Positions 3,679 to 42,586 of a stretch of DNA of 64,000 bases are shown here, in pieces. Each line of letters begins with the position of its first letter. The stretch's first letter is position 1. This stretch comes from Calcarisporiella thermophila CBS 279.70. Taxonomy: Eukaryota; Fungi; Calcarisporiellomycota. A program made the translations under genes and the position numbers. Location: NCBI RefSeq assembly GCF_041956535.1, contig NW_027192204.1:615905-679904 (forward strand), written 5' to 3'. The notes below the pieces were generated by a model. It was not told the DNA's origin and did not search any database. It saw only the letters and a program-made list of their open reading frames with translations.

Positions 3679-4033
3679 NNNNNNNNNNNNNNNNNNNNNN
3701 NNNNNNNNNNNNNNNNNNNNNNNNNNNNNNNNNNNNNNNNNNNNNNNNNNNNNNNNNNNNNNNNNNNNNNNNNNNNNNNNNNNNNNNNNNNNNNNNNNNN
3801 NNNNNNNNNNNNNNNNNNNNNNNNNNNNNNNNNNNNNNNNNNNNNNNNNNNNNNNNNNNNNNNNNNNNNNNNNNNNNNNNNNNNNNNNNNNNNNNNNNNN
3901 NNNNNNNNNNNNNNNNNNNNNNNNNNNNNNNNNNNNNNNNNNNNNNNNNNNNNNNNNNNNNNNNNNNNNNNNNNNNNNNNNNNNNNNNNNNNNNNNNNNN
4001 NNNNNNNNNNNNNNNNNNNNNNNNNNNNNNNNN
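3679..4033. other. Assembly gap (run of N)
   Basis: 355 consecutive N bases. Confidence 1.
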
Positions 4034-38488: not shown

Positions 38489-38572
38489 TCCGGCCACCCG
38501 GATTCGAACCAGGGACCTAAAGATTGCTATTATCACTACAGTCTTCCGCTCTACCAGCTGAGCTATAGCCGG
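38489..38572 (-). tRNA. tRNA-Tyr(GTA), intron-containing
   Basis: Minus strand reads CCGGCTATAGCTCAGCTGGTAGAGCGGAAGACTGTAG-[short intron]-ATCTTTAGGTCCCTGGTTCGAATCCGGGTGGCCGGA. All arms pair; T-run terminator downstream. Confidence 0.95.
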
Positions 38573-38655
38573 ATTACATAATTTGTTACTAGAAAATCAG
38601 TTTTTGGTACGAGCAAGTCACTTTGACAGTCACACGGTATTCGAGAGCCTAACGC

Positions 38656-38970
38656 GCCGTCTCTGGATGGCACAGTGGTTAAGAGCCCCGGGACTTAACC
38701 AATGTGTGCTGGGTTCGATTCCCGGCGACGGCACCTGTACTTGAGATGGATCCGGGACATACTCTAGGAATCGAGCTAAAATCTACTTAGTTCTTAATAA
38801 TTTGATATTGATCGTTCTCAGAAAACAAGAAATATGTTTAATATAGTGACTTGTCAGAAGAAATACATGTAAGCAATGGTTGAGCGTTAGAAATAGCGTG
38901 CAAATCCTTTCATTTAACTTGTATAAGAGACTTTTCAATAAAAGATCCTTCAATCTCAAAAAAAAAAAAA
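38656..38970 (+). mobile_element. SINE A (tRNA-derived head, poly(A) tail, 15-bp TSD)
   Basis: A box TGGCACAGTGG; B box GGTTCGATTCC; acceptor-like GCCGTC/GACGGC; A13 tail. TSD TCGAGAGCCTAACGC (38641-38655) / TCGAGAGCGTAACGC (38971-38985). Confidence 0.9.
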
Positions 38971-38979
38971 TCGAGAGCG

Positions 38980-39261
38980 TAACGCAGTAACCCCTACCTT
39001 ATCCCCCTCCTATCCTCTGCTTCCATTTGTTTACTACCCACCCCATTTCTCATGTTATCCTTGGATATCCACAGTTAGTTGAGTTTCACCACTCCCTTAC
39101 CTATTTGAGCTGAAATTCGATATGACCAACATATAATTTCGATCTACGATATCACCCAAAGCTTTAGCTTTGACTTCCCTTTCACATTATTGCTTATAAT
39201 AATGTAACAATTGTATTTTAGAGTCTTTCTATACAATAAAGACTCGGCATTGATAAAAAAA
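38980..39261 (+). mobile_element. Element B: 5'-truncated non-LTR 3' UTR fragment
   Basis: Pyrimidine-rich body, 3' hairpin GAGTCTTT...AAAGACTC, A-tail. TSD ACGGTATTCGAGAGC(C/G) at 38634-38649 and 39262-39277. Confidence 0.8.
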
Positions 39262-39285
39262 ACGGTATTCGAGAGCGTTCTCGGA

Positions 39286-40213
39286 ACACTTGCAAAAGAT
39301 GTTCCCTAGGGATACCTGAAACCATTGCCCATGCCTTTCTAGACTGCCCAGCTATCGCACAACTCTGGCAAAGAGTTGATGAGACAAACTGCCGAATAAT
39401 TGGAATACCGCCACACGAATCCACGAGAGAAGACAGACTGTTTGGACAAGACAAACAAATAAGTCAACGCTTCAACGAAGTGGTTGCTCTGAGCCACGAC
39501 ATAGCCCTGTGGATAATATACCGCTCGAGACTTGAATTAGTGCTGGACGATGTCCAACCCAATCCGGTAGCCATAACCAAACAATTTGACCACGAACTAC
39601 AGCGAGGAATAAAGTCCAAGTGGTGGATGGCAATGAAACAGGAAGGGAAAAGAGACTTCATCGATAAATGGTCAAGGGGAAACTGGGTGAACACCATAGA
39701 TGATTCTGTGATTTTCATCCAGAACACCTCCGAAGATCAAATCCCAGCCCCAACTCCGGCCTGAGAACTGCACCCAACCCTTCACTGCTGTATATTAATA
39801 CCATCTCCTCTATCGTTCTTTTCCCTACTTTTTCTTTTTTTTTTTCCTTTTTTCTCCTTTCCTCTTCCTTCTTTTACTTTTTCAATCCTTCACTTATTTT
39901 CGTTATTTCATGCACACAATCAGCCTATCTTAATACCATTGCACACAACTTTTTATCCCTCCCTCTTACAGTTATTCCTATCCCCTTCTTTATTAAGCTA
40001 ATTGCTGTTTCCATACTTTCCTAGCTCTTTCCTCATCACCTTTTCTCTCTTCCTCTTACACTTAAATCCTTTTCTTCCTTTCTTTCTTTTTCCTTCTATC
40101 CTCCAAATTCTGCAAGGTAGGCCAGGAGCATTACCTGGGTGATTTTGACGTAGAGGCTACCCAACCTTTCTAACAGGATAGGACACTTTCAATAAAGGTC
40201 CTTTGTTAAAAAA
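39286..40213 (+). mobile_element. Element C: 5'-truncated LINE (L1/Tx1-like ORF2 C-terminal zinc knuckle + 3' UTR)
   Basis: Open frame to TGA 39764 with CKRCSLGIPETIAHAFLDCPAIAQLW (zf-RVT-type CCHC); pyrimidine-rich UTR; A-tail. TSD about 20 bp at 39266-39285 / 40214-40233 (2 mismatches). Confidence 0.88.
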
Positions 40214-40233
40214 TAATCCAGAGCGTTCTCGGA

Positions 40234-40945
40234 TGAAGGTCTGGACCTTCATCCAAAAACGGCCAACCCTCCCAAAACACCGCACACTACGCTGACGAAT
40301 CCTCGTAGAGCGTGTAATTACAAATTCGACATTCCCTGGTGATGACCCGAAATGTACTCGCTGTAATGCTCCGAGGGACACCATCCATCATACCTTCTTC
40401 GAATGTCCCGAACTCACATCAGTGTGGCTTTGGGCGAAGAGGTGTATCAACACCATCTCAGGCCCCCTAAACACTCAGGTGCTGAACTCCAGGAATCTCG
40501 TACTTGACGACCTACCAGAAGCCCCGAGGACAGTAAGACACACGGCTCAAATCATCTTCGATTCGGTATTATGGCAAATCCATCGGGACCGAATCGCCTA
40601 CCACTTCGAATGCACTCGAGCACCACCCGAGACAATCATCGTCCGTGCCGAAATGGACATCGAGGAGGTTATCGGAGGTGAACTAATAAAGGCACGAAAA
40701 AGACGAGAGATGGAGTTATTTCGAAGAAGGTGGTGCAGTCAGGGAGCGGTAACAGAAAGTTCGGATAGAGCAAAACTAAAACTGGAGTGCCGAAGCAACC
40801 CTTCCTCTCTCCCTATCCGCTCTTTACCTCCTCCCCTCCACTTTACTTCATATCTTTCACCAAATACCCGATCACTATATACATCTAAGCTACTCTTTAT
40901 TCCCTTACTTCACGTTTATCACCTTCTCACTATTGATCAAAAAAA
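40234..40945 (+). mobile_element. Element D: 5'-truncated LINE ORF2 C-terminal fragment
   Basis: KVWTFIQKRPTLPKHRTLR*RIL...CTRCNAPRDTIHHTFFECPELTSVW; one in-frame TGA (40293); A7 tail at 40939-40945; TSD degenerate. Confidence 0.85.
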
Positions 40946-40968
40946 GCAGGAGTTTCTAGGTTATTGCG

Positions 40969-41385
40969 GGGGGTGGAGTAGCTTAGTGGTAAGCGCTCCT
41001 CGGTGCCATCGAAATGGCAGGGGTTCGAATCCCGTAACCCCCACAAGCACAAAAAATGTGTCTGGACTCTCCACTAATTCTGTGTCCTGCTTGTCGTGTC
41101 TATGCTCTCCATTACTCTTATTTCTGTCTTTTCCAGCCCGATTCTCTACAATCACTCTTCGTCCTGTTTTGTCTGATCTTCTCCTTATTACTGTCTCTCA
41201 TTACTGTCCCTTGCTCGCCGTAACTGTCGTGTCTGGTTATTCTACTATTGCTGTTTCTTAATTGTTCTGTAACTTCTGCCAGCAATTGGCTATAATCTAC
41301 ACAAAGGCCGTACAACCTTTGATTCCTCTTCAACGATTAACTCCATGAGGATACTTTTCAATAAAGATCCGTAGCTTCAAAAAAA
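40969..41385 (+). mobile_element. SINE 2 (tRNA-derived head, poly(A), 15-bp TSD)
   Basis: A box TAGCTTAGTGG; B box GGTTCGAATCC; GGGGGT/ACCCCC acceptor pairing; A7 tail. TSD TTCTAGGTTATTGCG (40954-40968) / TTCTGGGCTATTACG (41386-41400), 3 transitions. Confidence 0.85.
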
Positions 41386-41400
41386 TTCTGGGCTATTACG

Positions 41401-42246
41401 AAAATAGCTGGTGTCAGTATCAAGCTTTATTCTATCAAGTTCGGCTGACTATACCAGATATCACCAGATCCAGTAGCAGTAACCAGAGAATGGGCGCATT
41501 TCACCTCAGATGGGGGAGCGTGGAGAAGAGCCTGGAAGAATTGGCCAAGACGCCCAAGCGAGCCAAGGGAAAAGACCTTTCGATGACGTATACTTCAACA
41601 TAAGTTAATTACAGCAAGAATTGCTTAACATTTCGACCTTTCTAGCCCCAACTGCAAGAGATGCCGACGAGAAATGGTAGAGACCATAGAACACGCCTAC
41701 TTTGAATGTGCGAGAATTTGAGACCTTTGGAGTGGGTTTGACAGGCTCCATCAAAAGATCCTCGATAAGCCCTGGATAAGCATGCAAAAGTATGAGAAAC
41801 TCTTAGGATTCCACGAGGAGACACAAGGCAAAAATCGACAAGTCTCCGTGTTGTTACACGACATCATGGTCTGGAGTTCACATAAGACAAGGGTCGCAAT
41901 TGTCATGGACAACCAAGAACATGAGGGCATCGCATTCAAGAGTATCTTTTTATCAGACCTACTCATAGCAATTAAAGGACGATGGATACAAATACAGAGG
42001 AATAAAGCTGAAGAAAATTTCAAACAGAAATGAGGAAAGAGCTCGCTAATCCGGATCAATGATAACAAAGAAGTAGTTTTCGATCTCGAGGAAGCAAAGA
42101 ATACATAGTTTGATCCTCTTAAGCACGGAGCCCTTTAAGCTTCATCCCTTGTTTTCTTGTACCTAATAATCTTCATCCCTAACATATAATATAGTTTAAA
42201 TTAACCACAGGACGCAAATTCTCGCGTCCTTAGAGGAAAAAAAAAA
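41401..42246 (+). mobile_element. Element E: decayed 5'-truncated LINE ORF2 C-terminal fragment
   Basis: WRRAWKNW...EKTFR*RILQHKL...CKRCRREMVETIEHAYFEC; five in-frame stops and no frameshift; native stop 42106-42108; 3' hairpin AGGACGC/GCGTCCT; A10 tail. Confidence 0.87.
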
Positions 42247-42260
42247 TATTCTGGGTTGCC

Positions 42261-42586
42261 GTCGCCCTAAGATTAGCATAGTGGTTTGGGATCCCGTAGC
42301 CGAATCACTAGGTTGCGGGTTCGATTCCCATAGGCGACACCCCGTCCATGAGAGTTTGCCGAGTTTTTCACAGGACTGGATCGCTATCAATAGTATAGCA
42401 ACAAGCAAGTAATATCAAGCGGCTACAAAATTAGGTAGCAAAAATCTTTAGGAGAAAAGTCCAACTGCAAAAATGGGGGGTCAGGGGCAGTACCTTGGTG
42501 ATTTTGACGTTGAAGTCTACCCTTTCATTCCCTTCAGATAAAATTATCAAGTGGACGTAGAATAATTCGTTAGGTATGAAAAAAAA
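42261..42586 (+). mobile_element. SINE 3 (tRNA-derived head, LINE-C-like 3' segment)
   Basis: A box TAGCATAGTGG; B box GGTTCGATTCC; GTCGCC/GGCGAC pairing; about 40-nt match to the element C 3' UTR; A8 at 42579-42586. No clear TSD. Confidence 0.75.

Follow-up and report, generated by a model that had tools for sequence, protein, structure and literature searches.

Why should seven retroelement copies lie one behind the other, all pointing the same way, beside a single tRNA gene? This question is raised by positions 38,489 to 42,586 of a 64,000-nt stretch of the genome of the fungus Calcarisporiella thermophila CBS 279.70 (contig NW_027192204.1, positions 615,905 to 679,904 of the forward strand), hereafter called the window, taken from an assembly of 28.2 Mb in 116 contigs. 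Seven poly(A)-tailed elements devoid of long terminal repeats (non-LTR elements) are found there, all on the plus strand and every one with its 5' end toward a tRNA-Tyr gene of the minus strand. A first-pass annotation of the window, made from the letters alone, had described them as a chronologically ordered pile of insertions attracted by genes that RNA polymerase III (Pol III) transcribes. In the light of the follow-up reported here, the stack is very probably the record of repeated homing retrotransposition, by long and short interspersed elements (LINEs and SINEs) aimed at a narrow interval upstream of tRNA genes.

Composition and order of the stack

Three tRNA-derived SINEs and four 5'-truncated L1-like LINE tails make up the stack, and all seven elements, together with their A-tails, are present where the first-pass annotation had placed them. 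With the element ends set by comparison with longer genomic copies, the segment reads, from the tRNA gene outward:

38489-38572, minus strand: tRNA-Tyr(GTA) gene with an 11-nt intron, found with the full RF00005 model at 56.9 bits; its 5' end at 38572 is the anchor of the stack
38584-38649, plus strand: start of a U1-type solo-LTR-like repeat (TGTTAC...), which begins 12 nt from the tRNA gene and within which the LINE/SINE stack is inserted
38656-38970, plus strand: SINE A, whose head derives from a tRNA and has its A box at nt 13 and its B box at nt 57, and whose A-tail is 13 nt long; target-site duplication (TSD) 38641-38655 / 38971-38985
38981-39262, plus strand: LINE-B 3' end of 282 nt, strongly 5'-truncated, with the last nucleotides of open reading frame 2 (ORF2), the 3' untranslated region (UTR) and an A-tail; TSD 38634-38649 / 39262-39277
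39284-40213, plus strand: LINE-C 3' part, with the ORF2 C-terminus and its CCHC motif, the 3' UTR and an A-tail; TSD 39266-39285 / 40214-40233
40236-40945, plus strand: LINE-D 3' part, with the ORF2 C-terminus, one stop codon and an A-tail; weak TSD
40969-41385, plus strand: SINE 2, with a tRNA-like head at 40972-41043; TSD 40954-40968 / 41386-41400
41400-42246, plus strand: LINE-E 3' part, with the ORF2 C-terminus, at least four stop codons and an A-tail; TSD 41385-41399 / 42248-42262
42259-42586, plus strand: SINE 3, the outermost element, with a tRNA-derived head and an A-tail of 8 nt; no TSD of its own could be recovered

The TSDs of SINE A, LINE-B and LINE-C were recovered by a scripted search with 14/15, 15-16/16 and 18/20 matching positions, exactly at the coordinates first given for them. 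Farther out, the TSD of SINE 2 matches at 12 of 15 positions, its 3 mismatches all being transitions, and that of LINE-E is identical at 9 of 15, with 6 transitions and no transversion; because every mismatch is a transition, these two TSDs are considered as real though old. Decay resembling repeat-induced point mutation (RIP) was considered for these transition-only differences and rejected, the ratio of transitions to transversions being about 2 in three families, with no dinucleotide bias. The repeats proposed for LINE-D (6/8 by script, about 10/16 by eye over a longer span) and for SINE 3 (6/8) are unconvincing when taken alone. The TSDs of the window overlap and map 62-92 nt upstream of the tRNA gene and, once the younger inserts are removed, all the junctions of the stack are located 77-92 nt from the tRNA 5' end.

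Regarding the order of insertion, the first 5 nt of LINE-B are duplicated at 38651-38655, inside the TSD of SINE A; full-length LINE-B copies read ...GATAACGCAGTAACC. Because the TSD of SINE A holds the first 5-6 nt of LINE-B, as had been pointed out in the first-pass annotation, SINE A is younger than LINE-B. The nested TSDs prove the order for this pair only, all other pairs fitting either order, so that the chronology formerly proposed for the whole stack stands proven at one step, while its other steps, in which the more outward element would be the older, rest on the position rule together with the decay of the TSDs and of the ORFs. The ORF2 remnants contain no stop codon in LINE-C (160 aa), one in LINE-D and at least four in LINE-E. 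Similarly, the best identity to other genomic copies goes from 95-97% for SINE A (with at least 51 matches in the genome, up to 97%), LINE-B and LINE-C (48 matches, up to 95%) to 80-88% for SINE 2 and SINE 3, whose best other copies are 80% and 88% identical, respectively. SINE A is the youngest element of the stack, and SINE 3 is probably the oldest.

The sequence TTCTNGG was found, as announced, at the five positions 39278, 40226, 40954, 41386 and 42249. This recurrence is that of a single original site recopied by serial insertion, and not that of a recognition motif.

The anchor gene carries its intron after position 37, the anticodon loop being read by eye. It was missed by ARAGORN in the default mode, which considers no introns and detected no tRNA in the window. 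When introns were allowed, the same program gave 38489-38572 an Asp identity, which was rejected in favour of Tyr on the basis of Rfam and inspection.

Position and orientation at other tRNA genes

The upstream regions of other tRNA genes of C. thermophila were compared at numbered loci (L001-style labels). Among about 1459 RF00005 candidates, 63 were scored and used as an unbiased tRNA sample, and the unbiased set consists of the 1.5 kb upstream of 40 tRNA genes, with the Rfam score as sole selection criterion. Five of these 40 genes are unscorable, a stretch of N preceding the site, which leaves 35 evaluable ones. A library element starts 68-101 nt upstream in 17 of the 35, and two more elements recognised by eye (L063, L084), together with three unclassified multi-copy repeats, extend this count from 17 to 22. 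In the score-picked set, 17 of the 26 first elements fall inside this 34-nt interval (P = 2.8e-22 under a uniform null).

When the samples are pooled (66 distinct tRNA genes, 59 evaluable), 33 genes display a LINE/SINE 5' junction at less than 130 nt, and all 33 junctions lie at 68-101 nt, with a median of 84 nt and a standard deviation (SD) of 6.9, none being nearer than 68 nt. The orientation is the same in 33 cases out of 33, the 5' end of the element facing the tRNA and its transcription running away from the tRNA gene. The peak in divergent orientation upstream of tRNA genes, which the first-pass annotation had put forward as the test of its proposal, is therefore observed in the DNA sampled. 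The 33 occupied sites belong to 28 unrelated flank clusters and to 19-20 anticodon classes. Downstream, none of 64 tRNA genes has a boundary of a library element within 150 nt (Fisher P = 2.5e-14). In addition, the 12 perfect or near-perfect TSDs measure 11-19 bp (mean 15.4) and extend roughly from -60 to -94, and no shared motif or base preference was detected among them at either nick boundary.

Individual families show the same spacing. Of 30 SINE A copies, 8 are divergently oriented with respect to a tRNA whose 5' end is 75-91 nt away, and 6 others face a tRNA at a distance of 0.4-1.3 kb, with other elements in between. The copies of LINE-B have varied 5' truncation points, yet their truncated end lies 68-94 nt from the tRNA (L036, L040, L041, L042, L048, L051, L054, L069), and this spacing, kept despite the varied truncation, is characteristic of a junction defined by the target. 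The genomic copies of LINE-C, LINE-D, LINE-E, SINE 2 and SINE 3 were analysed by coordinates only. Empty-site paralogues were identified for two insertions, namely L096 for the LINE-B copy of L048, and L074 for the SINE A copy of L092.

The last two loci, tRNA-Thr(AGT) in L074 and tRNA-Asn(GTT) in L092, are on different contigs and have about 300 nt of upstream flank in common, at 90-97% identity; in the copy without SINE A, 11 nt (GACGCAAGTGC) are duplicated in tandem at the point of insertion. On contig 10 (209.5-214.0 kb), unmasked far-end coordinates fit a LINE-B copy of about 4.45 kb, with 78 nt separating its 5' junction from a tRNA-Lys gene. At a larger scale, tRNA genes are strongly clustered on contigs 8, 10, 24 and 29, C8:936-1123 kb and C29:5-151 kb, for instance, each holding at least 8 of them. 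Since most LINE, SINE and LTR matches are located in these same regions, the tRNA clusters are the repeat sinks of the genome.

Several points weigh against repeated homing as the explanation of these data. The DNA examined amounts to about 0.27 Mb of 28 Mb, distributed over 101 loci, 60 of which were picked because an element was present. About 40% of the evaluable tRNA genes are unoccupied, and some element copies have no tRNA within 1.5 kb; the latter may correspond to long stacks, displaced stacks or untargeted insertions. Besides, stretches of N start exactly at the expected insertion point at several loci, whose genes were left unscored. Finally, the LINE ORF2 is known from fragments and coordinates and the stack from the assembly alone, and copies that are 90-97% identical are no proof of current activity.

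Other Pol III genes were looked for with Rfam in 20 element loci without tRNA, and none was found there; the 5S rRNA genes gave only 4 matches, none of them near the listed element copies. As for the stretches of N, they start 77-95 nt upstream of tRNA genes in L070, L076, L081, L082, L084 and L097, and others are present in L075, L078, L079, L083 and L087 and at 3679-4033 of the window.

The LINE and SINE families and a neighbouring LTR family

The LINEs display the domain order of the L1 clade, as established from coordinates: an N-terminal APE endonuclease, a central reverse transcriptase (RT) and a C-terminal zf-RVT of CCHC type. On contig 3, PF03372 (APE) and PF00078 (RT) are present in one open frame of 1372 aa which ends, by coordinates, just upstream of a LINE-B tail. 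PF13966 (zf-RVT) was identified in six C-terminal fragments of LINE ORF2, and longer LINE-B copies run upstream into an ORF with zf-RVT. Among solved structures, an RT fragment taken from a stack best matches human L1 ORF2p (8e-21; 2.5e-12 for R2). The C-terminus of the LINE-D ORF2 is 73% identical to that of LINE-B at the protein level, and those of LINE-C and LINE-E reach 23-24%, with the CCHC region kept. Because LINE-C and LINE-E are far diverged from LINE-B, and LINE-D is close to it, at least three L1-like lineages (B/D, C and E) are found at this site. The C-terminal 486 aa of LINE-B have no relative among solved structures, and no close relative of this C-terminus was detected outside C. 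thermophila among 1.8 billion representatives. Beyond its own genome, HMMER retrieves with it APE-RT-zf-RVT proteins, among them one of Chara braunii, whose identity is at most 28%.

At least four families of tRNA-derived SINEs were recognised (A, G, 2 and 3); their A box lies at nt 11-15 and their B box at nt 54-59, and the other marks of such SINEs, namely a LINE-related 3' end, an A-tail and a TSD, are present as well; the head of SINE 2 scores 24.1 bits against RF00005, below the gathering score. The 3' motif CTTTCAATAAAG is common to SINE A, SINE 2 and LINE-C, the 3' end of SINE 2, CTTTTCAATAAAGATCC, resembles those of LINE-C and SINE A, and the body of SINE 3 has 29-44 nt in common with the LINE-C 3' UTR. 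Taken together, the domain matches, the A and B boxes and the LINE-like 3' ends bear out the earlier view that several L1-like LINE families coexist here with tRNA-derived SINEs, the latter being presumably mobilised by the former.

SINE G, of about 340 bp and with the head GGGGGAGGGTTAGTGTAGTGG, does not occur in the window and is the first element most often encountered at tRNA genes; identity among its copies is 93-100%, and they are flanked by perfect TSDs of 15-19 bp (L062, L064, L091, L094, L037, L055, L058, L059 and others). The hexamer AATAAA precedes the A-tail by 15-25 nt in SINE A, SINE 2, SINE G, LINE-B and LINE-C (e.g. 38935-38957, 41355-41378, 40190-40207). SINEs of the T+ class depend on a polyadenylation signal, and the Pol III-type SINEs of this genome may do so too. 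In a single case (L002:1304-1500), a SINE G fragment and a SINE A copy have their heads turned toward each other, with about 100 nt and no tRNA in between; on the basis of this one case, SINE heads, which contain A and B boxes too, might serve as insertion targets.

The repeat within which the stack is inserted belongs to a second family found at tRNA genes. U1 is a repeat of 350-430 bp with the termini TGTTAC...GTAACA and TSDs of 4 bp (GACT, AAAA, ATTT, GAAA). It has at least 60 genomic matches, with up to 99% identity, and its start is found beside many different tRNA genes, 11-12 nt from their mature 5' end (L096, L003, L007, L022, L048 and the window); the start of the window copy is 76-89% identical to the tRNA-proximal flanks in L013, L064/L052 and L007. 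No internal gag-pol region was found for U1, which looks like a Ty3-style solo-LTR family. Tandem U1 copies carry one common 4-bp TSD, which argues for repeated Ty3-style integration at the Pol III start region. About 12 U1 copies are interrupted within LTR nt 51-80, and in most of these the ends overlap. This is where the LINE/SINE insertion interval falls. Some SINE copies are one LTR length farther from the tRNA, because a later LTR insertion would have pushed them out. Nevertheless, U1 does not explain the position of the LINEs and SINEs, because most occupied sites have non-LTR flanks.

At least five more families of common tRNA-proximal flanks, 60-70 nt long and starting with TGTTG or TGTTAC at about -8 to -14, were noticed beside unrelated isotypes (L087/L091/L095/L099; L042/L070/L073/L078; L090/L098/L021; L097/L100/L085; L002/L037). 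Further LTR families, targeted in the same manner, are the probable explanation.

Mechanism, rival explanations and known systems

The elements are proposed to insert by target-primed reverse transcription (TPRT) directed to the narrow interval upstream of tRNA genes. The priming nick would be made on the tRNA-sense strand, some 68 nt away from the mature 5' end; the second one would follow about 15 nt farther out, at about 84 nt, and the two staggered nicks would give rise to the duplication of 11-19 bp. The 5' end of the element would in this way always be directed toward the tRNA and its poly(A) tail away from it. As the site is measured from the tRNA gene instead of being read from the local sequence, each newcomer would land between the tRNA and the prior insert, duplicate the same few nucleotides again and push the older copies outward, from which an ordered stack of seven would result.

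Unrelated sequences receive the elements at a constant position and with a fixed polarity, so the ruler would belong to whatever assembles on the tRNA gene. The analogy of TRE5-A of Dictyostelium discoideum suggests that it would most likely be the initiation complex of Pol III (TFIIIB/TFIIIC), with which a protein encoded by the LINEs would make contact. Furthermore, since the SINEs share only their 3' ends with the LINEs and yet reach the same site, the homing determinant would act in trans in the ribonucleoprotein (RNP), as ORF2p or a co-assembled ORF1p.

The main alternative to a TFIIIB/TFIIIC ruler is a positioned nucleosome or a DNA bend: the endonuclease would favour the nucleosome edge or the bend upstream of TFIIIB-bound tRNA genes, with no direct contact between the LINE protein and the transcription factors. 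The interval of 68-101 nt is just past the expected TFIIIB position, no sequence motif is present among the TSDs, and Ty1 is known to target nucleosomes upstream of tRNA genes (PMC5911963), all of which would be in line with such an effect. However, Ty1 insertion is periodic over hundreds of bp and occurs in both orientations, whereas the elements studied here form a single sharp peak (SD 7 nt) in strict orientation, which a polar and fixed ruler fits better than a nucleosome surface. A chromatin effect is thus considered as unlikely, although it survives better than the other alternatives.

Much less probable is the recognition of a sequence, in which a specific endonuclease of the Tx1 type would read a motif in conserved tRNA-upstream sequence, e.g. 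U1 or TTCTNGG. It is true that the window flank belongs to the U1 family, that the interruption falls at the same LTR position in many U1 copies and that TTCTNGG follows five A-tails in the window. Nevertheless, the 33 occupied sites, with their 28 unrelated flank clusters, offer no single conserved target, and the 12 clean TSDs are without a common motif. In addition, the repeats of TTCTNGG are one site re-duplicated serially, and the interrupted LTR of tandem arrays is readable as the older one, which once adjoined the tRNA.

Random insertion followed by selection for harmless places, duplication of blocks made of a tRNA and an element, or misassembly might be invoked in a small genome of 28 Mb whose tRNA genes are clustered, some of them with common flanks, but is the least credible of all, as selection cannot give an SD of 7 nt, one orientation in 33 of 33 cases and no boundary in the equally harmless 150 nt downstream, the own TSD and flank of each site indicate independent events in place of block duplications, and unique TSD-bounded junctions speak against misassembly.

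Homing by means of something assembled on the tRNA gene has precedents. The L1-clade elements TRE5-A, TRE5-B and TRE5-C of D. discoideum are inserted 40-54 bp upstream of tRNA genes, TRE5-A at 44-54 bp, in opposite transcriptional orientation and without any target motif; their ORF2 combines APE, RT and a zinc finger, they end in an oligo(A) tail, and the ORF1p of TRE5-A binds TFIIIB (TBP, Brf1, Bdp1), the targeting needing the B box (PMC5911963). The Calcarisporiella elements resemble TRE5 in their narrow upstream interval, fixed opposite orientation, absence of a motif, use of many isotypes and combination of APE, RT and zinc finger. They differ from it in their distance, TRE5 being found at 40-54 bp from the mature coding sequence against 68-101 (median 84) here, in their host, an amoebozoan for TRE5 and a fungus here, and in the gathering of several divergent LINE lineages and four SINE families at one site. 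Two other non-LTR elements also lie at a fixed distance upstream of tRNA genes, namely NLTR-B of Polysphondylium pallidum at 39-64 bp and NLTR-A of D. purpureum at 2-6 bp (PMC5911963). Both carry an RNase H in place of the zinc finger, whereas the Calcarisporiella LINEs carry zf-RVT and are placed at another distance.

In fungi, Ty3 and Ty1 of Saccharomyces cerevisiae and Tj1 of Schizosaccharomyces japonicus likewise find safe havens at Pol III genes, which Ty3 reaches through TFIIIB and Ty1 through the AC40 subunit. However, these are LTR elements that rely on an integrase and produce TSDs of 5 bp, in contrast with the TPRT proposed for the LINEs and the TSDs of 11-19 bp found here, and Ty3 is inserted in either orientation (PMC5911963). 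Their counterpart in the Calcarisporiella genome would be the Ty3-like U1 solo LTR, whose TSD is of 4 bp against 5 bp for Ty3. For LINEs of the Tx1 group and other target-specific ones, such as Utopia of U2 snRNA genes, a specific sequence is what is recognised, and the insertion falls within a repeated gene. L1-like or related LINEs are tied to small-RNA genes in both situations, but the target sequences are unrelated here and the tRNA gene is left intact. Finally, the tRNA-derived heads with A and B boxes, the A-tails, the TSDs and the LINE-like 3' ends of the SINEs are reminiscent of LINE-SINE pairs of the L1/Alu type, from which the present SINEs differ in that they would inherit the homing specificity of the LINEs. 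To our knowledge, no case of co-targeted SINEs has been reported, and no SINE is named among the tRNA-gene-targeted elements in the reviews (PMC5911963).

With regard to the host, the cystathionine gamma-synthase encoded in the window matches a C. thermophila protein at 100% identity; its nearest proteins outside C. thermophila are those of Mucoromycota and Glomeromycota, at 57% identity or less, and C. thermophila belongs to the Mucoromycota sensu lato. The first-pass annotation knew of no description of such homing in this group, and none was found in the literature searched (fungal, Mucoromycota and Calcarisporiella). Altogether, it seems probable that non-LTR elements have evolved Pol III-gene homing independently in this fungus, with at least three LINE lineages and four SINE families on one ruler of about 68/84 nt, beside a Ty3-like LTR family, the determinant being a trans-acting protein of the RNP; according to the literature searched, this would be the first such case in Fungi.

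In the reviews, documented homing of non-LTR elements to tRNA genes is confined to dictyostelid amoebae (TRE5, TRE3, NLTR-A and NLTR-B; PMC5911963, PMC5006619), its origin is called unresolved, and TRE-like elements are stated to be unknown from any other group (PMC5006619). If a deep-branching fungus has a system of this kind as well, it would clearly illustrate how "safe havens" are reached by convergent evolution in compact genomes. Such a second system would also provide an independent system for studying how Pol III factors steer a TPRT complex and, if true, a natural test case for aiming a TPRT machine by means of a transcription complex, which bears on the design of site-directed insertion tools based on LINEs. 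For C. thermophila itself, homing explains the repeat-rich surroundings of the tRNA genes, and because the innermost element is the youngest, it offers a built-in relative dating of the insertions.

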